33,114 nucleotides of DNA from Macrostomum lignano (Eukaryota). The first letter of the stretch is position 1, and each line of letters opens with the position of its first letter. This document shows positions 5,097-32,755 of the stretch, in pieces. A program made the translations under genes and the position numbers. The stretch is from assembly GCA_002269645.1 (NCBI GenBank), contig NIVC01003974.1:1-33114 (forward strand). Reading direction: 5' to 3'. The notes under the pieces are model-generated. The model was not told the DNA's origin and ran no database searches. It was given only the letters and a program-made list of their open reading frames with translations.

Positions 5097-6006
5097 AAAA
5101 CTGAGGGCTGTTCCATGGTCCTCTGAAACTGAGGGCTGTTCCATGGTCCTCTGAAACTGAGGGCTGTTCCATGGGCCTCTGAAACTGAGGGCTGTTCCAT
5201 GGGCCTCTGAAACTGAGGGCTGTTCCATGGGCCTCTGAAACTGAGGGCTATTCCATGGGCTTCTGAAACTGAGGGCTGTTCCATGGGCTTCTGAAACTGA
5301 GGGCTGTTCCATGGTCCTCTGAAACTGAGGGCTGTTCCATGGGCCTCTGAAACTGAGGGCTGTTCCATGGTCCTCTGAAACTGAGGGCTGTTCCATGGGC
5401 TTCTGAAACTGAGGGCTATTCCATGGGCTTCTGAAACTGAGGGCTGTTCCATGGGCTTCTGAAACTGAGGGCTGTTCCATGGGCCTCTGAAACTGAGGGC
5501 TATTCCATGGGCTTCTGAAACTGAGGGCTGTTCCATGGGCTTCTGAAACTGAGGGCTGTTCCATGGGCTTCTGAAACTGAGGGCTGTTCCATGGGCCTCT
5601 GAAACTGAGGGCTATTCTGAAACTGAGGGCTGTTCCATGGGCCTCTGAAACTGAGGGCTGTTCCATGGGCTTCTGAAACTGAGGGCTGTTCCATGGGCTT
5701 CTGAAACTGAGGGCTGTTCCATGGGCCTCTGAAACTGAGGGCTGTTCCATGGGCCTCTGAAACTGAGGGCTATTCCATGGGCTTCTGAAACTGAGGGCTG
5801 TTCCATGGGCCTCTGAAACTGAGGGCTATTCCATGGGCTTCTGAAACTGAGGGCTGTTCCATGGGCTTCTGAAACTGAGGGCTGTTCCATGGGCTTCTGA
5901 AACTGAGGGCTGTTCCATGGGCTTCTGAAACTGAGGGCTGTTCCATGGGCTTCTGAAACTGAGGGCTGTTCCATGGGCCTCTGAAACTGAGGGCTGTTCC
6001 ATGGTC
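5097..6006. repeat. Intronic 28-bp minisatellite (GAAACTGAGGGCTGTTCCATGGGCYTCT), ~32 copies
   Basis: Direct tandem copies; the minus-strand ORFs have a 28-aa period (3 units). One internally deleted unit near 5615. The array fills the intron at 5001-6086. Confidence 0.97.
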
Positions 6007-6506: not shown

Positions 6507-6596
6507 GTGAATGTCCTGATCCAAAGTTTTCATCCAAGTCTTTGTAGCTAGCTATTTGCAGTTTGTTTTATCTCTATTACTTTCCTTTCAAATACT

Positions 6597-7160
6597 GCAT
6601 CTAGAGCTCCATATCTATAGAGCTGCATCTAGAGTTCCATATCTATAGAGCCGCATCTAGAGCTCCATATCTATAGAGCTGCATCTAGAGCTCCATATCT
6701 ATTGATAGCCGCATCTAGAGCTCCATATCTATAGAGCCGCATCTAGAGCTCCATATCTATTGATAGCCGCATCTAGAGCTCCATATCTATAGAGCCGCAT
6801 CTAGAGCTCCATATCTATTGATAGCCGCATCTAGAGCTCCATATCTATAGAGCTGCATCTAGAGCTCCATATCTATAGAGCTGCATCTAGAGCTCCATGT
6901 CTATAGAGCTTCATCTAGAGCTCCATATCTATAGAGCTGCATCTAGAGCTCCATATCTATAGAGCTGCATCTAGAGCTCCATATCTATAGAGCTGCATCT
7001 AGAGCTCCATATCTATAGAGCTGCATCTAGAGCTCCATATCTATAGAGCTGCATCTAGAGCTCCATATCTATAGAGCTGCATCTAGAGCTCCATATCTAT
7101 AGAGCTGCATCTAGAGCTCCATATCTATAGAGCTGCATCTAGAGCTCCATATCCACAGAG
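6597..7160. repeat. Intronic 28-bp minisatellite (GCATCTAGAGCTCCATATCTATAGAGCT), ~20 copies, with a few 30-bp variants
   Basis: Direct tandem copies inside the intron at 6507-7198. Confidence 0.97.
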
Positions 7161-8472: not shown

Positions 8473-9062
8473 GTCTTGTCTATGGGACTAAATTAGCATC
8501 AAAGTCTTGTCTATGGCAATAAATTAGCGTTAAAGTCTTGTCTATGGCGATAAATTAGCGGTAAAGTCTTGTCTATGGCGATAAATTAGCGGTAAAGTCT
8601 TGTCTATGGCAATAAATTAGCGTTAAAGTCTTGTCTATGGCGATAAATTAGCGTTAAAGTCTTGTCTATGGCACTAAATTAGCGTCTAAGTCTTGTCTAT
8701 GGCGATAAATTAGCGGTAAAGTCTTGTCTATGGAAATAAATTAGCGCTAAAGGCTTGTCTATGGCAATAAATTAGCGCTAAAGGCTTGTCTATGGCAATA
8801 AATTAGCGCTAAAGGCTTGTCTATGGCAATAAATTATCGCTAAAGGCTTGTCTATGGCAAAAAATTAGCGCTAAAGGCTTGTCTATGGCAATAAATTAGC
8901 GCTAAAGGCTTGTCTATGGCAATAAATTATCGCTAAAGGCTTGTCTATAGCAAAAAATTAGCGCTAAAGGCTTGTCTATGGCAATAAATTATCGCTAAAA
9001 GCTTGTCTATGGCAGTAAATTATCGCTAAAGGCTTGTCTATGGTACTAAATTAGTGCTAAAA
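8473..9062. repeat. Intronic 31-bp minisatellite (G(T/G)CTTGTCTATGGCAATAAATTAGCGYTAAA), ~19 copies
   Basis: Direct tandem copies in the intron at 8348-9627. Confidence 0.96.
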
Positions 9063-11480: not shown

Positions 11481-12742
11481 CCCTCTGTAGCTGGTGCCCC
11501 CTTCTGTAACTGGCGCCCCTCTGTAGCTGGCGCCCCTCTGTAGCTGGTGCCCCCTTCTGTAACTGGCGCCCTCTGTAGCTGGTGCCCCCTTCTGTAACTG
11601 GCGCCCCTCTGTAGCTGGCGCCCTCCAGTGTAGCTGGCGCCCCCCTCTGTAGCTGGTGCCCCCTTCTGTAACTGGCGCCCCTCTGTAGCTGGCGCCCTCC
11701 AGTGTAGCTGGCGCCCCCCTCTGTAGCTGGCGCCCTCCAGTGTAGCTGGCGCCCTCTGTAGCTGGTGCCCCCTTCTGTAACTGGCGCCCCTCTGTAGCTG
11801 GCGCCCTCCAGTGTAGCTGGCGCCCCCCTCTGTAGCTGGCGCCCTCCAGTGTAGCTGGCGCCCTCTGTAGCTGGTGCCCCCTTCTGTAACTGGCGCCCCT
11901 CTGTAGCTGGTGCCCCCTTCTGTAGCTGGTGCCCCCTTCTGTAGCTGGTGCCCCCTTCTGTAGCTTGTGCCCTCTGTAGCTGGTGCCCCCTTCTGTAACT
12001 GGCGCCCCTCTGTAGCTGGCGCCCTCCAGTGTAGCTGGCGCCCCCCTCTGTAGCTGGCGCCCCTCTGTAGCTGGTGCCCCCTTCTGTAACTGGCGCCCCT
12101 CTGTAGCTGGTGCCCCCTTCTGTAACTGGCGCCCCTCTGTAGCTGGTGCCCCCTTCTGTAACTGGCGCCCCTCTGTAGCTGGTGCCCCCTTCTGTAACTG
12201 GCGCCCCTCTGTAGCTGGCGCCCTCCAGTGTAGCTGGCGCCCCCCTCTGTAGCTGGCGCCCTCCAGTGTAGCTGGCGCCCTCTGTAGCTGGTGCCCTCTG
12301 TAGCTGGTGCCCCCTTCTGTAACTGGCGCCATCTGTAGCTGGCGCCATCTGTAGCTGGCGCTCTCCAGTGTAGCTGGCGCCACCCTCTGTAGCTGGCGCC
12401 CTCCAGTGTAACTGGCGCCCCTCTGTAGCTGGCGCCCTCCAGTGTAGCTGGCGCCCCCCTCTGTAGCTGGCGCCCTCCAGTGTAGCTGGCGCCCTCTGTA
12501 GCTGGTGCCCTCTGTAGCTGGTGCCCCCTTCTGTAGCTGGTGCCCCCTTCTGTAACTGGCGCCATCTGTAGCTGGCGCCATCTGTAGCTGGCGCTCTCCA
12601 GTGTAGCTGGCGCCACCCTCTGTAGCTGGCGCCCTCCAGTGTAGCTGGCGCCCTCCAGTGTAGCTGGCGCCCTCCTCTATAGCTGGTGCCCCCTTCTGTA
12701 ACTGGTGCCCCTCTCTGTCGCTGGCGCTCCTCTGTAGCTGGC
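11481..12742. repeat. GC-rich composite minisatellite, variable 15-20-bp units with core TGTARCTGGYGCCC
   Basis: About 1.26 kb built from a few unit types (CTCTGTAGCTGGYGCCC, CTTCTGTAACTGGCGCCC, CCAGTGTAGCTGGCGCCC). All three minus frames are open, as expected for a stop-free repeat. Confidence 0.96.
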
Positions 12743-15858: not shown

Positions 15859-18677
15859 GAATATCTCTACATGTATTGATACTCATAGAGCTTTTCGTTA
15901 TACGAGTATTAGGATATAACGAAATTTACTCCTTCACTCCAAATTTACTCCAAGGACTACTCCTTCTACTTCAGTAGTCCTTGACTAATAGTTGAGCGCG
16001 TTTATTATTAGCTAACTTGCATCAACAACTAAAAATTGATTGACTGATTGATTGAAACCTGCGAATCGTTTCCCCCTAAAGTCAAATAGATTCCTTTCTT
16101 CCGGCAATACGACCAGAGGGCAGCACTTGAATTTGACCGATGCCACCGCGGCCACCACGTTGGTGCTCTGCTAGCCACATGCAAAGCTTGCAGCTGTTTC
16201 ATTTTTTGTCGATAAAACTTGGACCCCTGCTGCGATCGGTCAATTGCTCCTGGGCGATTTGGATCAGCACTATCGACGAGAGATATTTTCTTTCCGAAAA
16301 CTAAACGATCTAACCGGTACTCGTAAGTAAAGACACTCGGTTATTCTTTTTGATAATTTTTATACTTAGGAATTTGGAATTTACAAGCATAATTTTATTT
16401 AATTTATTCACCTGGCATAAAAAATAGTTCGATACGCGGGTTATTCTAGAAGTTTTCGAGCTCAGCCCGATCACCGAGTGCTTGCAAGACTCGCTTCGAC
16501 ACTCATCACCCTAGATTAGTTCTCTATTCAGCCTCTATATCAGACCTGCTAATTCTGATAGCTAGTTCGTCATTAGCAATGCCTGCAGTTTTTAACTTTG
16601 GATTTCTATCGGAGAAGAAAAACTTTTAACGTTGACAATCAAAAGTCATGACAAGTATTGCTTTTGTCCTGCTATGTGGAGCAGTGGGCATGCAAAACGG
16701 AACGGTCCATAAGAATTCATGGCCAAGCGGTTGAATTAACTTACAAAAGCAAACCATATATAGATAACCAGATTTTTCATGCAATATGGAACGGTACGCG
16801 ATCTGCAGCGCATCGTCGCCGCCTTGCACCGTGGACTGTCGATGAAGGGTTGTGACAGTGTTGTTAGGAGTATCCAATTTTTCTGTTCACCGCATTTGGT
16901 CAACATTCTAAAAGACAAGACGGCGCAGGTTGGAAGCTGCCACTTAATTAGCACTAGCAGACACCACTTAGCAGACAGCTGCCAACAACTGGACCCTAAG
17001 CGAAACTGGGTAGTTTTTAATTTTATGTATGGCCCGAATTTCTATCGTAGCGTACGGAGATCCCTGAGAACCATCGGAACAGAACTTCAACACGAATCCT
17101 GAAGCAGTGCATGGCACTTAAGCAGTTGAGATTCATGTTAAAAATCGAGAGAGAGGCGGCTGAAGCCGTTGGGCCACGCAATCACTGCTGGAAAGTGCGC
17201 TGGGTTGGAGCTGCCCTGCAACAGATTGTTTGAATTGTCTCTGCAGCGACATCAGTTTTGAGAGTTAATTTTTGTAAATTTTGATGCTTTCAATCTGTGA
17301 CAAAATATGCTTTATTGATTCAGTTTTTATTCTTTCTTTAAATGTGTAATAAACCACTGAAACGAGGAGATACTCTATGCAGAATCTCCGAGGCGAAGCC
17401 TCAATATTTACAATATTTCCGGACCGCAGGCTTTGGCTCTAAGTCAACAATGGTCCGCCCCTGTACTAAACTTCTACGGGCCAACCACGATCAATTTCAG
17501 TTCCCCGACAAACAAGATGCAATAGTGATAGCAATAAAAAGTTGTAGACTAACGAACTAAAACAACTATAACTGACTAAACGCTTGTTTACCGTTTTAAC
17601 GTTCAATAAATATACGTGTTCTTGTTTTACTATCAATTTTAAGTTTGTCTATGGTGGCGGAGTTAACGCTACCAATAATCTCCGCGAGCTTAACACTAGG
17701 GACATAGGCAAGGCGAACAGGCAAAGTTGATTAAATAGAACTCAAATCATTTATTCTATTCTGGCTCACCGTTCCATATTGCAAGACAAATCGGCTTATC
17801 TTATGACTTGCTTTTGTAACTTTTGTAAGTTAATTCAACCGCTTGGCCATAGAATTCTAATGGACCGTTCCGTTTTGCATGCCCGCTGTTCCGTATAGCA
17901 CGACAGAAGCTATATTATACTGAGATGTACGTTTCCATTTATTGACTTTACAAGTTCTGTATTAGTATGCTAGTAAGAATCGCAAATGCCACGTACTTGG
18001 TTGAATTTACCAAGTAAGCATAGTCGACCTATACTCAACAACATTAAAAAGTCGCCACCTTTGAGAGAGCGCAGTAAATTCTGGCTCAGTATTGACTTTT
18101 GAGTGACGCAACTTGCGCCACGCGACGCAGAGTTGGGCTGGGTGAGGAGGGATTGGGAAGAGCGGAGGGCGAAGATTGGATGGATTAAAGCTTCCGCCCG
18201 GTTTTCATTGTTTTTTAAAGCATTTTTTAATATTAAAATGGTTGTCCAGGTGATAGACACTGGTCAAAAGACACTGCCCACTGGGGCAAAGGGTAGTGAC
18301 TTTTCAATGTTGCTGAGTATATCTTTTATTAGAGACAGGGGCTGTGTGCACCCTGGCGCACTTTAAGTGACATTGTCACACAAATTTTTTCAAGTCATGC
18401 GACAAAATTGAAATTACATTTATTTCTATGAAGTTGAATTTTTGCTGCATCTCTAGCTTTTCTATCTAGCGTCGATGACGAATCTGAAATTACCAACTCG
18501 AGGCCCTGAATGAAATAATAGTTAAATGGTTTAAAAAAATAACTTAGTATTCGATAATATGGTTTTCCGTGTACATGTAATTATAATATTGGTAGCAGCT
18601 AATTATTGCATTGTATTTGACTCAATCGACAGCGCCAGTGGTTGATAGCGATAACACAAGTCGCGTTCGTTCAAAGG

Positions 18678-21600
18678 ATGCAAGGCGCCCAGCTTCTCGT
18701 TTTCGCGCTGGCACTCAGCGCCTGCCCGATGGCAAATGCCGAAGGCTTGGGCACCAAAGTGGCCAAAAAAGCGTGGGACATTGTTCAAAACAAGCTGAAC
18801 CCAAAGAGCAAGGCCGAGATGTACCAGAAAGCTGTGGACATTGTGTCGGACCACATCACCAAGTCTGCCAACAAAGCTGAGAAGCTAGCTAGTAGCTACA
18901 TGTCGGCTGTGGACAAAGACCCCGGTGCTCTCATCACCAGGGAGAGCATGAAGAAGATCATAAGTGGCAGCTCATTCCTGCCGCAGAAGGCCGGCACAAG
19001 AACGGTGTCTCTGCAGTCGGATCAAGGATTCAACGGTTTCACCAACTACCAGCCATCGGGTTGGAAGATCACCGAAACAATGAGCGGTCCTACAGATAAG
19101 AAAGAGGAGCCTTCAGAGACCAAGGAGCCCGTTTACACTTACCCGATGGGCCTCGGCCCCGTTCTGCTCAACCAGTGCACGGAGAAGAACTACGACAAGA
19201 CCAGCCCGTGCTACAACAGCAAGTTGTTCGACCTGCAAATCACGATCTGCTTGAATCAGATCGACGCAGCCAACTATATCGGGGTGGGCTTCAACGGCAG
19301 AGGCTACTACAATGCGCAGAGTAGAAGAGCCAGCCTGGTTCAAAGAAGCTGCTCAAACCGAGCAACCTTCATGGGATCGGACATTCCCGACACTATGAAC
19401 ATATTCGGCATTTTTGAAACATTCGCCGAGACTAAGTCGTTCCAGTCAGCCGATGAGTATATGCAATACATCAGACATAAGGCTGGATTATCCAACCAAA
19501 AGAACTTGTTCGCGAGCGAGGCCAGCAAATACGGCAAGGCCAGCGGAATCGGCTTTGATCTTGGAGGCGTTGGCGCTGCAGCGGGAGCTTTGATCGGCGC
19601 CAAGGCCGGCGGTCCAGCGGGAGCCGAAATGGGCGCGGGTCTGGGCGGGGCTATTGGTGGCACCATCAATGGAGGCAGCGGATCTGGGTCAGGAAACGCA
19701 AAGCAGAGCGAACGGAGCAACAGTTCGTCTGCAACCAGTCACTTCGAAGCTTCAGACAAATTTCAAAAGGCCTCGAATAATTTCTTCGCGATTATGTATG
19801 TCAACGTTATTCTGTACGAGATCAGCTTGGATGAGGTGAAGCCAACAGATCTCAGTCTAGCCCTGCTTAAGGATTACATGAGCCTGCCAGTGTCCTATTT
19901 CTCCATCGGTGCTGACGTCAAGTACCAGAACTTCCTGCTGCGTTGGGGCACGCACTTCATCCGTTCAGGAAAGTTCGGAGGCCAACTGAAAATTACGAAG
20001 AGAGCGAGATCGGATAAGGTTCAGTCAGCTCAGCAGTTTGCCAGCATTGCAGAGACCGAGTTTCAATCCATGTTTGCCACTCTGCAGTCAAAATACTCGC
20101 AGAAGGAGAGCGGAATTGCTATATTCTTCATCAACACGAAGAGCAAGGAGGTTGCGCAGAACAGCCAAGCCAAGGCAGGGTCTGAATACTCGAGCTCTAT
20201 GAGGCAGACACAGAGCCAATCGCGTCAATTTCAGCAATCTGAGTTTACCCAGACAACCGTGGAGGCTCAAGGTGGAACTCCCGAGATTGCAGAAGCTCTC
20301 GTTGACTTTTACACCCCTGCGTTCAAGCAGATTTACCACGATTGGCTGGCGTCCATTAAGGACTACGCTAAGCCGTTCGAGTTCCAGTTGAAAGCTATTG
20401 ACGTGCTGTTTAACATGAACATGAACGACCTGTTTCCGGCTGGCAACATTGACTTCGGCTGCGTCAAGGATGGAGGCGGCAAAGCGAATATTCTCATCGA
20501 GCCCAAGACGAAACTTCGCTACTATATAGATGTTCAAACTCAGTTTTCCAACTCTACTAAGATTGAGGTAAAGAAAAAAGTCTATTGCAAGTACTCTAAG
20601 CTGGACGACTTCAAGACAGATCTCGACAGGCGCAGAATCTCTTTGGAGAGGGCCATCGGGGTGTACATGGCAGAGGGGCCGTTTCCAACATCGACTTTCG
20701 AACTCAAAGGCGGTGAGCCAGGGTGCGAAGAGGCCACGCTTGGAGCACTGAGAGCGGCCAATAAGGGCAAGTCGGCTGTGCTCAAGTTCTCGGAGATGAA
20801 AAAGTACCCATTTCTTGTTACATTCGATTTACCAGAGGCAATCCCGGGCCTCATTCCGAAGCAGTCAAAGTTCAGACTCATCTACAGATCAGGCATGTGG
20901 TTTGCGACTGAGCCCACACAAACGACCATGCATCTGTACGATGGCTGCGAGATTCCAGAGTCCAAAGAGGCAAAGATCTGCTTCAGGAATATTATCATGA
21001 CTTACAATGAAGCGTCTGGATTTCTGCGCGTTGATGCGAAAGATTTCCGTGCGACGAAAGCCAGGATACCAGCTTTGCCAATCTGGCTGGCAAATTCCGT
21101 TGTTGCCAGGGTACAAAAGCTTGAAATTTCTGCAACCGCTAAGAACGATATGTATGGCGGCCGGGGTGCGGTTCCTTGCAACATCAAGTGGGTGAACTCG
21201 CATCGTCTTGACCCGCAGAAGGAAGAAAACTGCATTCACTTCACTGCCGCCACCTCAGGTGACATATTCGTCATACTTTCAGCCATTCCAAGGGACCATT
21301 CTACCTGGTACTACCTGCAGATCAATCCCGAAGGTGTTTCGTTTTACCAGGCGATGGAATTAAAACGAAGGGACACTCAGAAAGGAATGGGAATCCTTGG
21401 CGATAGCAACCTCTTTCAATCATTCTTCGTCTGTGTCGTGCAGAAGAAGGACAGAGTAACGATGCAGTACGGAAAGGCAGATCCCGTGAGCGAGGTCGGC
21501 ACCGTGTATTCGGGTTATACATTTGCACCCGACAGCCAATTCAGCCGTTTGTCATTTTATACATTCGGGTCCGGTCGCAAGCCTGTGTCATTAATGGACA

Positions 21601-23194
21601 TCCGTCTAACCCGAATGTTGCCCCAGGTGAAATGTTTGAGCAAAAACTACATCAATGTAGACGGGCACTGCGTTCTCGCGTGCCATTCGGAGTGCGATCA
21701 GTGCGATGTAGCCAGAGACAACAAGTCGTGCCGCCGGTGCAAGCACGTGCGAGTGGAGACTGGCAGCGGAAAGTTGAAAGTGACGGAGTGTTTCGCAGAA
21801 TGTCCGCCTGGAACCACCTTGAAATCGTCTAAGACTGCGACTAAGAAGACTAAGGCTAAGCCGACTGGTCTGTGCGAGAAGTGTCCGGCAGGAACCTTCA
21901 AGAGTGGCGACGGAAACCAAAAATGCAGTCCGTGTCCCAAAGGAAAAATAAGCGACGCTGGAGCCAAAAGCTGCGTAGCCTGTGAAGCCGGAACCTTCAA
22001 CGACAAGCTTGGCCAGTCGAAATGCCAGCGCTGCGCACTCGGAACCTATTCAAGCGACGGTGCGGTGAGCTGCACAAAATGCCCTGTCGGGCACTATTCC
22101 GATAGTTTAGGCCAATCATCCTGCTTGCCATGCTCTTTTGGCAGCTTTGGGAAAGTCACTGGCCTGGCAAAGTGCACCCCCTGTTCGAAAGGATATTTCG
22201 CAGACAAAAAAGGTCAATCAATTTGCTCAAAGTGTCCGGCCGGGACGTCCAGTGCCAAGGGCTCGATGACTTGCAATAACAGTTGCACGAAAGGCAAATT
22301 TAGCCCTCGAAAGGGTGAGCCGTGCAGGCCGTGTCCTCCAGGCACGTACGGCGACAGTGTGGGCTCTTCCGCTTGTTCGAAGTGCAAAAAAGGCACCTAC
22401 CAGTCAAAGTCGGGTCGAACTTCGTGCATTTCAGCACCGATTGGTCACTACGTGTCGAAGGAGGGGCCACTAAACCGTCTAAATGCGCAGCAGGATCATT
22501 TACCGCTAAAACAGGAAGCATAAAATGCCGCCCGTGCTCTCCTGGAAGCTATGCGTCATCCACCGGCTCGACCGCTTGTAAAAAATGCTCGCGCGGCTAC
22601 TTCCAGCCTTCGACAGGCCAATCGAGTTGCAAAAAAGCGAGATATCATCATTATGTTAATCAGGAAGGAGCGGTGAAGGACACCCTTGCTCTGCCGGTTA
22701 CACGGCTGCTTCCGACCGCAGATCTTGCCACAAGTGCCGTCCAGGTACCTATGGCTCGGGAACAGGTCTTGGTTGCACAGGTTGCTCATGGGGTTCCTAC
22801 TCAGGAAAATATGGAAGTTTGAGCTGCACCCCATGCCCAAAAGGCTATTATCAACCTAATCATTATGCAACTTCATGCATTCCCGCTCGGCGAGGCTATT
22901 ACATCAACCGTGTGGAATCAACATCTCCTGGCTCCCAATGCGCCCCTGGCTACTATTCTGATAAGCCGGGTCAGGCTTACTGCAAGCCTTGCCCTGCTGG
23001 ACAAAGGAGTGAGAAAACACGCGGATCGACCTCGTGCCGGTATTGCGGACCCGGTACTTATTCATCTAAATCTGGCAGCACCCAGTGCAAAAAATGTCCA
23101 TCGTCTGATTATGTCACTAATGCGGCCCGCTCTGCGTGTCACAAGTGTCCAGCCGGTTCTATCGCGCTGAGCCAGGACAGGAGAAAGTGTTTTA
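18678..23194 (+). CDS. Secreted MACPF/perforin-family multidomain protein, exon 1 (~4.5 kb): signal peptide, MACPF, FAMeT-like domain, furin-like repeat and ~26 CxxC repeats; 1-bp frameshifts near 22463 and 22683
   Basis: Signal peptide MQGAQLLVFALALSACPMANA (18678-18740). Exact MACPF signature W-G-T-H-F-x6-G-G (19944-19982), plus IGVGFN, VEAQGG, WLAS..P and LERAI..Y landmarks. The Cys-repeat register continues across frames 0, 2 and 1. Donor GTGAGC at 23195, phase 1. Confidence 0.9.
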
Positions 23195-23291
23195 GTGAGC
23201 TTTTTTACTTCATTCTGATTCGAAGTTAGTCAAGGCCCTATAAAGTTCAGTATACTTATTATTCTAAATATATAAATACCAAAACTTTCAG

Positions 23292-23561
23292 AGTTCGGCG
23301 AGTGCTACTATCCTGGTAAAGACTTTGTTAGCACAAAGGTAAACCGTGCTTATGCTGGGCCGTGCCAGTCTTGGAGCGTGAAGAGCTGCTCCAAATACAC
23401 CGAAGGAGTAAGTTGTCATACGCCAAACAAAAGGGTGCGTGAGGCTCAAGCAACGGGCAACACGTGTCGAATTATCGCCAAAGAAGGAGAAAAGAAGCCA
23501 TGGTGTTACACAAAAACAGCTACAAAATGGTCTCACTGCTCAATTCCTAGATGCGGAAAAA
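23292..23561 (+). CDS. MACPF gene exon 2: kringle-like domain 1
   Basis: Acceptor TTTCAG ends at 23291. ECYYPGKDF..GPCQSW..NTCR..KPWCYT..WSHCSIPRC is the kringle consensus. Donor GTGAGT at 23562; phase 1-1 exon of 270 nt. Confidence 0.88.
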
Positions 23562-23911
23562 GTGAGTTGCTTGAATATTGATTACACTGCAGGCTAATAA
23601 TAGAGGAAAAACAACAGGAAGGCGTGTTCCGCAATGTTCTATTTTGCGTGACTAATGAAAACCCACTGTCTGGATTTTTATGATGTTAAGGTTTGTAGTT
23701 TAGAATTGATTCAATTTTAATATTTAGCAATGATTATTAAAATTTATTGCACTAAACGGAACCTATGCCGAAATTGTGTGAGAATTAAGTGCTTTGGGAA
23801 GCTCGCACCTTGTTTGTTGTTTGAAAAAGTAAAAACTATATGAGCCTAAATGGTAGCACAACAATTGCCCGAGACACCATTTTCTGCAATGCGTAGGGAA
23901 TGAGCGTAAGA

Positions 23912-24497
23912 CTCTATGATGAATTCTATGATGAACTCTATGATGAACTCTTATGGTAAACTCTAGGGTAAACTCTATGGTAAACTCTAGGGTAAACTCT
24001 ATGGTAAACTCTAGGGTAAACTCTATGGTAAACTCTAGGGTAAACTCTATGGTAAACTCTAGGGTAAACTCTATGGTAAACTCTAGGGTAAACTCTATGG
24101 TAAACTCTATGGTGAACTCTAGGTAAACTCTATGGTAAACTCTAGGTAAACTCTATGGTAAACTCTAGGTAAACTCTATGGTAAACTCTATGGTAAACTC
24201 TATGGTAAACTCTATGGTAAACTCTATGATGGTAAACTCTATGGTGAACTCTATGATGAACTCTGTGGTAAACTGTATGGTAAACTGTATTTTAAACTCT
24301 ATGGTAAACTTTATGATAAACTGTATGGTAAACTGTATGGTAAACTGTATGGTAAACTGTATGGTAAACTGTATGGTAAACTGTATGGCGAACTCTATGG
24401 TAAACTCTATATGGTAAACTCTATGGTAAACCTTATGGTAAACTGTATTGTAAACTGTACGGTAAACTCTATGGTAAATTATGGAAAACTCTATGCT
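23912..24497. repeat. Intronic 12-bp minisatellite (ACTCTATGGTAA), ~48 copies
   Basis: Tandem units with CTCTAG/CTCTAT alternation on the left and CTGTAT variants on the right, inside the intron at 23562-24561. Confidence 0.96.
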
Positions 24498-24561
24498 AGA
24501 TTCGTTCTCATAATTGTTTTTGCAAACTACCACCGTGGATTCATGCGCTATAATATTACAG

Positions 24562-24830
24562 AACTGAAGGAGTGCTACAGACTTGGCAGCACAGATTACG
24601 TCTCGGGCATCAGCGTGACGGAGAGTGGCAAGACCTGTCAGTCATGGGAGATTCGCACCTGCCCATCTGGCACCAGCGGCAAAACCTGCCACGAGCCTAG
24701 CAGCGCAGTGAAGCGTGCTAAAAAGATTGGCAACACCTGTCGGATTGTTCCCGGCGATTCAGCCAAAAAGCCGTGGTGTTATACTACTACGAGTAAGAAG
24801 TGGGAGTATTGCAAAATTCCGCAATGCTGA
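24562..24830 (+). CDS. MACPF gene exon 3 (terminal): kringle-like domain 2
   Basis: Acceptor TTACAG ends at 24561. ECY..TDY..VTESGKTCQSW..NTCR..KPWCYT..WEYCKIPQC ends at TGA 24828-24830. Confidence 0.88.
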
Positions 24831-28438: not shown

Positions 28439-29359
28439 ATTGATTCTGTAATAGTATCCACTACAAATTGATTAAATGTTCTTATGATACTACTATTAGT
28501 TCGCCGCTTGTATGTTTTGCTCCTACAGAAAGCCTGAATGAATTTATTTTTCTTCAATATTTTTAGCTGCTTCGATCGAAGTAATGTCGTGTGACTGCAT
28601 AATACTTCTGTACAGAAATTCGCGAACTATACGCTACTCACTACTACTTACTGATGGTAATGTTGTGACAGTAGAGCTCATATTTTACTGCCGCGAGTCA
28701 GTTACGAAATCGAGCAAACTTTTTGTAATTATGTTTTGTGCGAATCAATATAGTCGAGCATGGACTCGAACCCGGATAGAGAAGTCAACTGATCGAGGTC
28801 AAAGCCCCTCTCTTAAGTGTCAAGTTTAAATGTGTCAAGCACTTTTGTCTCCTTAGGTTCCAACGTATTTCTCAGCTATCATGCATAAATTCAAATGAGA
28901 AGCAGACGCGAAAAAAGCAGAAAGCAGGAAAGCTTACGAGCTATCAACAAAGAAAGCCTCGCCAATCTAAGTAATTCTTAATTATTTACTTAGCATAGTA
29001 GCCATTATATCATAAACGTGCATGTAAATAACGTATAGCATAGAGGACGCTTGTGAAGATAAATTACATGCATGCGTATCTTTCGCGTAGCTATACAGGT
29101 AAATGCCTATGTGCAAACCTGTGCAAACAAAAAACAATAGTTGGATGGTACGAGCGAATCTTTACAGTAGTTTATTGCAACTTTATGAGCCTGGAACCTT
29201 TCGAAACCTGGCAACTTAAAGCAGCACCTCATGCTTTCGAAGGTACTAGAACCTGGCCTGACAGTTGGAGTTGTATCGACGCCGCAACGGAGGTTGCTTG
29301 GATGCATGGGATTCAAGATGCTGATGCTGAATGCAAGCGTCAGAAGATTACAAGCATTA

Positions 29360-30100
29360 GAACGCAGTCCACCGAATTGATTGCGAAAGCTGCAGTCCGC
29401 AGGCGCCGCTGCCGTTGCCGTTGTACGCGTCGCATTCTTCGGTTGCGATAAACTGATTAGCACCACCGGACGAAGCTCTCGTCAGCTGACCGCAGCTACC
29501 CAGCGACGGCGGCGGCGGTGGCGGAGGCGGCGAGCGCTTTTTTCGACAGCAGCCGCTGTCCAGGCAGCGCTGGAAGGCCGGCTGGCCGTCTGCGTCGCAT
29601 AGCAGGAATGCGGTTGGAGCGAATCCTTCCACACCATCGCTAAGGCGGCGGACCCGCAGCCAATCTGGCCGACGCTCGCTGCAGTCGATGGCCAGTATTT
29701 TCTCTTCGGCTGACAGGGCCAGCTCGTCCGGGCTATTGGGCGACGGCGAATAGGCGAATACGACTGTGAAGGCGAGGCCGCGGCACGGACGGCGGTGTGG
29801 GTTCTGCAGGAGCGTCTGCTGCTGCATCTGCTGCTCGATCTGTAAATCAATGCCAAGGCCTGAGTCTTCGCGACTGCAGCAGGTGCCGAGAGACGCTGCG
29901 GGACGTAACGGATGCGTCGCAGCCGCAGGCTGGTTGAGCCGCTGCTGCTGGGTGAGGCACTGCTTGAATTGCTGGAGCTGGTTGGGTTGCTGTTGTTGTC
30001 TGGTTTTTTGGTGCTGGTCCTGGTTAGGCCGCTGCAGGTGACGGTGCTGTGGATGAAGCGGCTGCTGATTTTGCTTGAACAGTCGAATATGCATGTATTT
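29360..30100 (-). CDS. Gln-rich, SH3-domain, poly-Pro protein (exon; 5' boundary uncertain)
   Basis: FTVVFAYSP..PDELALSAEEKILAID..DWLRVRRLSDGVEGFAPTAFL fits the SH3 pattern (about 29590-29770). It is preceded by a Gln-rich tract and followed by PPPPPPPP. GC-rich coding-like composition; stop at 29357-29359. Confidence 0.75.
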
Positions 30101-32145
30101 ATAGCCACACTTCATGCATGCATGTAGTACACGTACCGTTTCACTTGAAGCAGGCTGTAGCGACTCGCTCGATGCGCCCTTAGTTTTATTTGAATGTTTC
30201 ACAAACAAATTCATTTCAACAAAATAATAACTGTAATCCTCTAATTCTAAATACGAGCTGAATTTTGATTTTTAACTCAACAATATGCTGTCAACCCCGG
30301 AAATCAAGCTATCCAAGATTCACTGTGGAATGGTGCTTCACATTTCAAACATTCCAAGCCTGTTGCATTTATAATATAAGAATGTTTTTCTTCTTCCAGT
30401 GAGGCTGCGAAGCAAGAGGTAGAATTTGTTTTGCTTGCTGCTGGAGTTCATTCTACACTGTAGCGAGTCTGCATGGTTGGCTGGCTTTTTGAAATGCTTC
30501 TGTGTCAAGAGCGACAGATAATGCAGAGCCATGCAGTTAAGAGACTTGAGAGAGTCATTCCATAGGCGGGTTTGTCAATTTGTTTGTCAAAGCTGAACCA
30601 ACATGAGCAGTAAAAACTGATGGCAACAGAGGCCGCTCTTGCTGTAGTGGCTGCAGCAAATGCTCAATTCAACTGTGTCACTACTCAGAATTATGTAGCT
30701 AGACATTTGCACTGGTTCAGTGTGTGTTGCTTACAGCCAATTTATTAATTTTTACTGACACTTCAGTATATCTATAAAGCATGGTGAGGCTTGAGTCGCT
30801 TCACCATTCCACAACTACAGCACTGTCATAAAGTTTTTATGACGAAAAATGCAGAACACCTTTCTCTTTTTTACGGCTAACAATATATGCAGTAGAAAAG
30901 AACAAAATTTTAAAGAAGTCTTCTCTATGAAGGCAGAGACCCCACAGTCTCCCAGTCGATGCAAATGTACAGCCGAGCTCCCCATGAGCTCAAATTTTTT
31001 TCTAGCATAGATTGTTGGTTGATTTTTCAGTGAATTGTACAGTGAAGCAGTCAATTGTTCTCTCTCCGGATTTTACTTTCCTTTGCTAAGCTCAAAATAG
31101 CTAGTAGTGGCTTGCGTAAAATGACATATACACTCGTAAATCGTTAATACGACCTTAAATGCGCCGACCCGACTTGTTCCTGCCAATTTTTTTTCCAAAA
31201 GTCAAACTTGAGCAGAATTAGTTTGTGCTTTTGTTGTATCCCACATATACACTTGTAACGATTGAAGTACTGGTGCAGTATTTTTAAATCCTGATTTAAA
31301 AAAAGTAAAATATTATCCGTTTTTTAGATTACTTTTTTCTCCAGTGGCCAGTTATCAAAGATTTTGTATCTGAGCGTTTTATTCACTTTACTAACGGTAA
31401 ACAACTATCTACTCTACGATTTGCATGAAAAGCTTTAATCATTTTCACTAATGGAAAAATAACTGCAAGAAAAAAGCATCACATATCAACTGTTTTAGGG
31501 TCGAACACATGATGGTCATGGTTATTAGATTATATTTAACAAACAACATATCAACGACTGTTAAATTTGAAACCTTCTAATCAAAAACAAGCAGTAAGTT
31601 TTCTGTCAATAAAATGTACTAAAAATACCAAATATATGCTAACACTGCGAAGCTAAATAAATATATACTTGCGAGTTGCGGCTTTAAAGAAACGAAACTT
31701 TTAGGTAAAACGTTTTAACATTTGTACAGCATGTAAAGTTCTATACAGGACAACAATAATCAATGAATAACGTATGGAATTTTAGCTACGAAACGTAGGC
31801 GGTAGGCATCCAAAGGGGCTATTGTTTAAGTAGAACCAATCTATTGAGTTTTTATTTATTATGGATGGGTAATTGGCAGCCGCTTATGCATATCAAGTGT
31901 TCGAATGACTTTTTTCTAGCAAAAATATATTGAATTTTACAAACAATTTGATTCTCTGCATGTCCGTGCCTAGCCCGGGTGGGTAAATTGGATAAATGTT
32001 TTTGATTTTTAGTTTCTTGGCTTTTGCCATGTTAAAAATATTTGATATGTGAGAGCATTGTTGCTTTTAATTGATTTTTTCAAAGATTATCTAAATAACA
32101 TCCCAAATCCGCTTTTTTAGCTGAAGCCTGAAAAGATTTAACAAT

Positions 32146-32204: not shown

Positions 32205-32755
32205 CTTAGTTAAGTTTGGCCTGGGTGAGAATTATCGATTGGCTAGTCAAGCTCCGGTGGGGCCTGACTTTTAATCGTTTTAAAAAAACGTCGGCCGCTC
32301 ACCGTCCCCCGCCTAGGCTCTTTTTTATGACATTAACGTTTAAATTAATAGCCTTGCAGTGGGTTTGGTCTGGTTGAACATTATCGATTTTTTGGTTAGC
32401 CGCAGTTCAGACCGGGCCTGACTTTTAATCGTTTTAAAAAAACGTCGGCCGCCCACCGTCCCCCCGCCCTAGGCTTTTTATGACATTAACGTTTAAATTA
32501 ATAATAGCCTTGCAGTGGGTTTGGTCTGGTTGAACATTATCGATTTTTGGTTAGCCCTGCAGTTCAGACCGGGCCTGACTGTTAATCGTTTTAAAAAAAC
32601 GTCGGCCGCCCACCGTCCCCCCGCCCTAGGCTTTTTATGACATTAACGTTTAAATTAATAATAGCCTTGCAGTGGGTTTGGTCTGGCTGAACATTATCGA
32701 TTTTTGGTTAGCCTGCAGTTCAGACCGGGCCTGACTGTTAATCGTTTTAAAAAAC
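32205..32755. repeat. ~155-bp satellite-like tandem repeat, ~3.5 copies
   Basis: GGGCCTGACT recurs at 32261, 32414, 32571 and 32727 (periods 153, 157, 156). A degenerate copy may extend to about 32870. Confidence 0.93.

Follow-up and report, generated by a model that had tools for sequence, protein, structure and literature searches.

The DNA considered here, called the window below, is a stretch of 33,114 nucleotides from the flatworm Macrostomum lignano (GenBank assembly GCA_002269645.1, contig NIVC01003974.1, positions 1 to 33,114 of the forward strand). An open reading frame (ORF) of 1293 codons, taken from the ORF list and located at 18642-22523 on the plus strand, encodes an M. lignano protein with a domain of the MACPF type (membrane attack complex/perforin). 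The protein is 100% identical to the UniRef entry A0A1I8J970, a 'MACPF domain-containing protein' of the same species. The first of the two transmembrane hairpin regions of this domain (TMH1 and TMH2) bears at its centre a glycine zipper, i.e., a run of glycine residues spaced four positions apart. As judged from the sequences compared, this zipper is a conserved, clade-specific module of 32-38 residues in the flatworm MACPF proteins and a few relatives. The features of the gene are listed below; the central strands were assigned by DSSP in an AlphaFold2 (AF2) model and are also given in the numbering of the modelled fragment, and HMM stands for hidden Markov model.

18678..18740, plus strand: probable start codon (ATG, the first in ORF 18642-22523) and signal peptide, MQGAQLLVFALALSACPMANA.
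19416..19442, plus strand, residues 259-267: central strand beta1 (E95-103 of the AF2 fragment).
19443..19781, plus strand, residues 268-380: TMH1 region, the beta1-beta2 connection of 113 residues (AF2 topology and HMM-anchored extraction).
19563..19613, plus strand, residues 308-324: arm 1 of the glycine zipper, GGVGAAAGALIGAKAGG (translation, glycine periodicity and register table).
19614..19616, plus strand: Pro325 of the GG-P turn at the TMH1 midpoint (Pro in three Macrostomum-type sequences, Ala in the homologues P0014 and P0041).
19617..19676, plus strand, residues 326-345: arm 2 of the glycine zipper, AGAEMGAGLGGAIGGTINGG (translation and register table).
19677..19700, plus strand: Gly-Ser linker SGSGSGNA after the zipper (alignment; (G/S)n is kept in all six zipper-bearing sequences).
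19722..20420, plus strand, residues 361-593: Pfam MACPF domain PF01823 (E 1.3e-15; score 58.5 bits, cutoff 21.5).
19776..19829, plus strand, residues 379-396: central strand beta2, FFAIMYVNVILYEISL (E215-232 of the AF2 fragment; conserved in the family).
19944..19982, plus strand, residues 435-447: MACPF signature W-G-T-H-F-x6-G-G, WGTHFIRSGKFGG (invariant columns in the family alignments).
19953..20012, plus strand, residues 438-457: central strand beta3 (E274-293 of the AF2 fragment).
20001..20246, plus strand, residues 454-535: TMH2 region, 82 residues (HMM-anchored extraction).
20250..20270, plus strand, residues 537-543: central strand beta4 (E373-379 of the AF2 fragment).
21639..22520, plus strand: cysteine-rich Ephrin_rec_like repeats at the C-terminus, the probable target-binding part; the array runs on in the 3' direction in other frames.

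Among 17-residue windows of the N-terminus, the most hydrophobic one (mean Kyte-Doolittle hydropathy, KD, 1.72) lies in the MQGAQLLVFALALSACPMANA stretch. This stretch is likely a signal peptide, and the MACPF protein is likely to be secreted. The Pfam search found six Ephrin_rec_like repeats at the C-terminus. Long ORFs are sparse in the window, where AT-rich stretches (25-30% GC) flank the GC-rich coding DNA and many satellites occur. A bacterial origin of the gene was ruled out by the sparse ORFs, the AT-rich intergenic DNA, the satellites and the complete identity to the M. lignano UniRef entry.

The AF2 model of residues 165-703 was built from 22 homologues (predicted local distance difference test score, pLDDT, 62.9; predicted template modelling score, pTM, 0.62). 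Its elements follow in the order of beta1, two helices with a disordered stretch, beta2, a helical linker with the signature, beta3, a helix with an unmodelled stretch, beta4 and a helix-turn-helix, which is the canonical MACPF order. Foldseek comparison of the model with known structures retrieved GNIP1Aa, Mpf2Ba1, C9, C6, TgPLP1, perforin and MPEG1 at E values from 2.5e-9 to 1e-6. The zipper therefore lies inside TMH1 by topology, as follows from the AF2 element order together with the Foldseek matches to MACPF structures. The centres of both hairpin regions are of low confidence in this model.

The midpoint of TMH1 falls at residue 324.0, and the turn of the zipper is G324-P325. The midpoint of TMH2 (494.5) lies inside another apolar patch, GIAIFFI, at residues 491-497 (nucleotides 20112-20132). 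The apolar or aromatic character of the patch at the TMH2 tip is conserved; the patch reads GFLGFG or SFLGLG in close relatives and SSSWFH or SSSWWH in Branchiostoma. Since the apolar patches stand at the exact centres of TMH1 and TMH2, both hairpin tips are marked in this way.

The 38 residues encoded by 19563-19676 on the plus strand (residues 308-345) are GGVGAAAGALIGAKAGGPAGAEMGAGLGGAIGGTINGG. Glycine occupies segment positions 4, 8, 12, 16, 20, 24, 28 and 32, which makes eight consecutive period-4 steps around the central GGP. Such a run was reached by 0.22% of 200,000 composition-preserving shuffles (p ~0.002), and no other period reaches a run of this length. With the zipper motif defined as (G/A/S)xxxGxxxG (PMC12744356), the consecutive small-xxx-Gly steps of the segment place it in this motif class. 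All four glycine codons are used in the DNA of the zipper. A microsatellite origin was considered and rejected, no tandem repeat being present: Tandem Repeats Finder returned nothing at 19300-19900. A sequence-only reading of the window had described the segment as a run of GxxxG motifs split by a GGP turn and lying mid-way in a stretch of about 110 residues before the central strands of a MACPF domain. The translation reproduces the motif run exactly with its eight steps, the beta1-beta2 connection comes to 113 residues, and the GG-P turn (324/325) coincides with the hairpin midpoint. The assignment to MACPF in that reading agrees with the Pfam score, the signature and the Foldseek matches, and its placement in TMH1 with the position between beta1 and beta2 in the AF2 topology and the similarity to MACPF structures.

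The arms of the zipper are marginally hydrophobic, with a mean KD of 0.5-1.5 per arm, below the usual threshold of 1.6. Estimated translocon-scale free energies, summed per arm, come out above zero throughout (+3.6 to +12 kcal/mol). The window copy has K and E inside its arms. In the Fourier analysis, the paralogue described below peaks at 90 degrees and is weak at 180 degrees, and the window copy has some 180-degree signal.

Five more sequences preserve the zipper register, G-(A/G)-x-(I/L/V/M), namely a paralogue with 57% identity (L001), a protein with 63% identity (P0023) and three metagenomic homologues with 32-37% identity (P0014, P0016 and P0041). The period-4 glycine runs have 8 steps in the window copy and the paralogue, 9 to 11 in P0016, P0041 and P0014, and 4 in P0023, in which one Gly is replaced by Ala. 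Across the six sequences, the first register position (G+0) is Gly in 48 out of 52 cells. Either Ala or Gly stands at G+1, and G+2 tolerates polar residues. In arm 2, position G+3 is a bulky apolar residue (I/L/V/M) in all 23 of the 23 cells; arm 1 is apolar in all registers.

The paralogue is a second M. lignano copy, and its frame upstream of the annotated protein encodes GFNLGAIGGIVGGAIGAIAGGPAGAALGAALGGAVGGSL, which has the length and the register of the window zipper, with I and A in place of the window K and E. Ten of the 13 glycines common to both copies differ in codon, so glycine has been maintained while the synonymous sites turned over. In this copy, an in-frame TAA stands between the zipper and beta2 beside a run of seven A (L001:9935-9937, the P0002 locus). 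The annotated protein of L001 starts at beta2 and hides the zipper because of this upstream stop, which could mark a pseudogene of recent origin or else an error in sequencing. A further relative, P0008, is 59% identical to the flatworm MACPF protein and lies on a 1250-bp contig of a metagenome-assembled genome, under the name 'MAC/perforin domain-containing protein, partial [Kangiellaceae bacterium]'; animal DNA has probably been assigned to a bacterial bin here. In glycine-rich tips lacking the extra segment, e.g., AAGYGAGGGIFGLGGSAGGGFS, the register is absent and the period-4 runs do not exceed 4.

The lengths of TMH1 and TMH2 were obtained for 50 family members, from which both regions were cut by three HMMs anchored on the conserved strands. 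The members were drawn from an exhaustive HMMER search (349 hits, E<1e-3) and from indexed searches. Unmasked word-indexed homologue searches gave 5 and 4 proteins, being swamped by the low-complexity hairpin regions, and masking of these regions with X raised the number to 17. The lengths in residues (TMH1 and TMH2) were as follows.

Coral proteins: 41 and 46.
Branchiostoma and others: 80 and 78.
P0006: 81 and 82.
P0026: 80 and 82.
Window protein, P0023 (63% identity), P0014 and P0041: 113 and 82.
P0016: 105 and 82.

The two hairpins are matched in length in all but five proteins, and these same five are the zipper carriers. TMH2 has 82 residues with the zipper (the carriers) or without it (P0006 and P0026). 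The TMH1 of P0016 is shorter by 8 residues, i.e., by two zipper periods. The zipper is accordingly called an insertion because the hairpins are matched in relatives without it and measure 113/82 or 105/82 in its carriers; by this comparison of lengths it is a true insertion of about 32 extra residues at the TMH1 tip. This bears out the earlier claim of an insert. The same reading had named an unconserved low-complexity linker as the finding that would speak against it; the segment turned out to have a conserved register and no underlying DNA repeat. In the family as a whole, the lengths of TMH1 and TMH2 co-vary, the zipper clade excepted, and in bilaterian members both regions are unusually long and polar, having ~80 residues each with much S, Q, T, E and K.

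Glycine-zipper modules are known from bacteria. The segment matches four Pfam families over nearly their full profiles, with scores below the gathering thresholds: Gly-zipper_Omp (PF13488), YMGG (PF13441), OmpA (PF13436) and Rick_17kDa, the 'glycine zipper 2TM' (PF05433). Each of these profiles aligns with all six zipper segments or with most of them, the best E value (~3e-4) coming from the homologues. The tips of the Branchiostoma proteins and of P0006 gave no match to these HMMs at E<=1. Bacterial glycine-zipper domains are likewise modules of ~40 residues with two apolar, GxxxG-rich arms and a short turn. Here, in contrast, the host is a secreted animal protein and the module is embedded in a loop of another domain. 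The resemblance is treated as one of motif, convergence on which is at least as likely as homology. Among the bacterial proteins, SlyB and YfgH are described as transmembrane glycine-zipper lipoproteins. The membrane-depolarising toxins TelE, EsxX and TspA possess extended (G/A/S)xxxGxxxG motifs that are helical and essential for membrane damage (PMC12744356). These toxins are soluble until they reach the target membrane, as the window protein would be. Theirs is a C-terminal effector kept soluble by chaperone or immunity proteins, whereas here the motif is a hairpin inside a MACPF domain, and the comparison is one of motif alone.

With C9, perforin, pleurotolysin B, MPEG1 and GNIP1Aa/Mpf2Ba1 the window protein shares the MACPF domain, the signature and the order of elements, and the zipper occupies the site of their membrane-entering hairpin tip. 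It differs from the known MACPF TMH1 in its length (113 residues against 82 for TMH2) and in its 4-periodic, almost uncharged centre of Gly, Ala, Ile, Leu and Val with arms of 17 residues. The membrane-spanning hairpin of pleurotolysin B has ~20 residues in total, is 2-periodic and amphipathic, and crosses 30 A with ~10 residues per strand (PMC4318580). The MACPF proteins of Branchiostoma, Owenia, corals and a chiton are 30-41% identical to the window protein over the MACPF domain and the conserved C-terminal region, and have patches at both hairpin midpoints, glycine-rich and apolar in TMH1 and aromatic in TMH2. They differ from it in lacking the 32-residue zipper, and their TMH1 and TMH2 are about equal in length. 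Members of the family from Branchiostoma, Owenia, Oculina and Liolophura are annotated as 'uncharacterized' or 'hypothetical'. M. lignano has been reported to carry 13 MPEG1 genes (PMC10781884). Orthology of the window gene to MPEG1 (perforin-2) was considered and rejected on the C-terminus, which consists of Ephrin_rec_like repeats (with a Kringle domain, PF00051, in the UniRef model) and not of a P2 domain and a transmembrane anchor. MPEG1 chains were absent from the PDB sequence matches at E<=1, and MPEG1 came only 11th among the Foldseek hits. In the literature searched, no paper linked MACPF with 'glycine zipper' or 'GxxxG'; PMC6626399, in which both Macrostomum and MACPF are mentioned, has no bearing on the zipper.

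Taken together, the position and the character of the zipper suggest a beta-barrel pore former onto which a membrane element of the helix type was grafted. The reading that the zipper tip forms an alpha-helical hairpin in the putative pore is tentatively favoured, at a probability somewhat short of even. The weak hydrophobicity of the module would let it escape the translocon of the endoplasmic reticulum, and the protein would be secreted as a soluble monomer; secretion rather than anchoring is expected because the arms are only marginally hydrophobic. In the monomer, the two arms may pack through their glycine faces as a helical hairpin and bury their apolar residues. Once oligomerised on the target membrane, the protein would unfurl the polar portions of both hairpin regions into the usual wall of the beta-barrel. 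The zipper would then overhang the TMH2 tip by ~16 residues per arm, entering and spanning the bilayer. It would most probably stay an alpha-helical hairpin, the glycine faces of which could also pack between neighbouring subunits. The outcome would be a ring of helical anchors or of pore-lining helices below the beta-barrel. The full version of this scheme, a natural alpha/beta hybrid pore in which a single 32-residue insertion has given the beta stalk a terminal ring of zipper hairpins that cross the bilayer and pack laterally by their glycine faces, is considered less likely than not.

Several lines of evidence favour the helical hairpin. The conserved unit consists of 4 residues rather than 2, and arm 1 is apolar on all faces. 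Seventeen residues at 1.5 A each give a helix of ~25 A, which matches the core of a bilayer. An overhang of ~16 residues per arm would be left unpaired below the barrel if it formed strands, and helices satisfy their own hydrogen bonds. Finally, glycine zippers are known as helix-packing and membrane-inserting elements of depolarising toxins (PMC12744356) and of proteins of the SlyB and YfgH type.

Other results weigh against the helical hairpin. In the AF2 model of the domain, the zipper is unstructured (pLDDT ~25). AF2 prediction of the isolated tip gave two helices, 307-323 and 325-342, that are separated by a break at G324, with a pLDDT of 56-63 and a pTM of 0.28, from 3 sequences only; the low confidence of this prediction counts against the helices, and the helix-break-helix pattern would be a weak hint in their favour. 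The AlphaFold check proposed in the sequence-only reading has thus upheld the placement in TMH1 and left the zipper itself at low confidence. The Pfam check proposed there came out similarly divided: all four glycine-zipper profiles align over nearly their full length and all four scores remain below the gathering thresholds. The best scores were 21.0 bits for PF13488 (cutoff 25), 20.7 for PF13441 (28.9), 15.9 for PF13436 (27) and 17.1 for PF05433 (24.2), and the segment is therefore left out of these families. Searching the PDB sequences with a zipper profile found no solved structure, the only matches being ADP-ribosylglycohydrolases at chance level (E 4.7-8.4). Every solved pore of the MACPF and cholesterol-dependent cytolysin (CDC) superfamily is established to use TMH1 and TMH2 as beta-hairpins (PMC4318580), and true beta hairpins of this kind can be rich in glycine, as the GGG runs in TMH2 of C8alpha demonstrate (PMC9935631). 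Read as a strand, the register would have one face of Ala and bulky apolar residues (G+1 and G+3) and another of Gly and polar-tolerant positions (G and G+2), which fits arm 2. The window copy, too, fits an amphipathic strand.

The strongest rival of the helical hairpin is a longer tip of the beta-hairpin. The whole of TMH1, including the zipper, would unfurl as amphipathic strands, with glycine supplying flexibility and small lumen-facing residues, and with Ala and I/L/V/M turned to the lipid. The extra length would suit a thicker or coated target membrane, or the tip would protrude on its far side. Such a tip has the precedent of all solved MACPF/CDC pores and of the glycine runs in C8alpha TMH2. 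In the window copy, the odd positions read V, A, A, A, I, A, A, G, A, A, M, A, L, G, I, G, I, the even ones carrying G, K, E, T and N, in line with its 180-degree Fourier signal. The polar residues of arm 2 are confined to the registers G, G+1 and G+2 and never occur at G+3, and relatives lacking the insert already have a short glycine-rich apolar tip at this site. However, TMH2 stays at 82 residues, so that ~16 residues per arm would form isolated two-stranded hairpins with unpaired edges, below a barrel to which each subunit gives four strands. Apolar arms of 17 residues are nearly twice as long as the ~10 residues per strand of pleurotolysin B. Arm 1 is apolar on both faces, the 90-degree signal dominates in the paralogue, and the conserved unit has four residues. 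The long beta tip is considered a serious possibility, though less probable than the helical hairpin.

All readings other than the helical hairpin and the long beta tip are, even when combined, unlikely. One of them is a self-association or plug element that would not span the bilayer and would mediate contacts between prepore monomers, latch TMH1 in the soluble state or occlude the lumen. GxxxG zippers are indeed known to mediate homo-oligomeric helix packing (PMC12744356), the Gly-Ser stretch that follows arm 2 suggests a unit on a flexible tether, and the mean hydropathy of each arm (KD 0.5-1.5) is only marginal. The exact hairpin tip, however, is the site of membrane contact in all MACPF proteins, G+3 is strictly bulky and apolar, and the adjoining TMH2 tip is also apolar or aromatic. 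The plug is considered quite improbable.

Still less probable, and by a small step, is a transmembrane hairpin inserted co-translationally, which would tether the protein to the producing cell via the TMH1 tip and act much as the C-terminal anchor of MPEG1 does. The function of MPEG1 is reported to depend on membrane anchoring (PMC13631362). The paralogue has an uncharged stretch of 36 residues with a central turn, and the topology is permissible, as a hairpin would keep the two halves of the MACPF domain together at the lumenal side. Nevertheless, the estimated translocon-scale energies of +3.6 to +12 kcal/mol per arm, the mean KD below 1.6 and the K and E within the arms of the window copy make insertion during synthesis very unlikely.

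A neutral Gly/Ala spacer of low complexity, tolerated in a variable loop, is disfavoured and has the slimmest chance of all: the family hairpin regions do vary in length and are rich in G, S, A and Q, and AF2 treats the segment as disordered, but the DNA shows no repeat, the period-4 register remains significant when composition is allowed for and persists in five other sequences, at identities as low as 32% and with turnover of glycine codons, and other glycine-rich tips of the family lack the register (runs <=4) and any glycine-zipper HMM match.

Downstream of the MACPF domain, ~300 residues (20700-21640, residues ~700-990) are conserved from corals to amphioxus, with the motifs CNxKWSNxHRxDP ... 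FTAASxGDIFVxF. The Pfam scan of this region and of the other ORFs of the window found nothing relevant, and since it has no Pfam match the region at residues ~700-990 constitutes an undescribed domain. Further Ephrin_rec_like repeats lie beyond 22523 in other frames, at 22322-22822 and 22819-23229, so the gene extends past the end of the ORF. A +1 shift occurs in the repeat array at a G-run (~22455-22462). Exons matching the C-terminus of the UniRef model are located at 23378-23581 and 24411-24830; the Kringle domain (PF00051) is listed for that model, which splices around part of the frame-shifted 3' repeat array. The frame changes at 22322-24830 point to assembly indels or to a decaying repeat array.

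The 3' extension of the gene also contains a 12-bp minisatellite of 49 copies (23906-24495), downstream of ORF 18642-22523. Further minisatellites occur at 5098-6004, 6595-7160, 8475-9061, 11481-12742 and 32260-32754; they comprise two arrays of 28 bp and one of 31 bp, a GC-rich 19/36-bp array of ~1.26 kb and a 157-bp repeat. The GC-rich 19/36-bp array gives rise to spurious long ORFs on the minus strand. The ORF 29357-30214 on the minus strand has a weak SH3 match (E 2e-4, just under the gathering threshold) and is possibly an exon of a neighbouring gene.

Those MACPF/CDC pores that are structurally known are all pure beta-barrels, and pore formers of the alpha type and of the beta type are regarded as distinct mechanistic classes. 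The zipper hairpin is a real, conserved and clade-specific variant of the MACPF TMH1, in a MACPF family that is itself uncharacterised. A zipper at the membrane-entering tip of TMH1, with TMH2 not lengthened, provides a natural test of the limits of tip chemistry and of hairpin-length matching in MACPF proteins. If the tip stays helical, the superfamily would gain its first hybrid architecture, and the engineering of pore formers a template. If the tip becomes a strand, it shows that a beta transmembrane hairpin can be formed by a sequence that cannot be told from a glycine zipper, a point of importance for annotation by motif. M. lignano is a laboratory flatworm for which tools for RNA interference and in situ hybridisation exist, and therefore the biology of this protein should be approachable.

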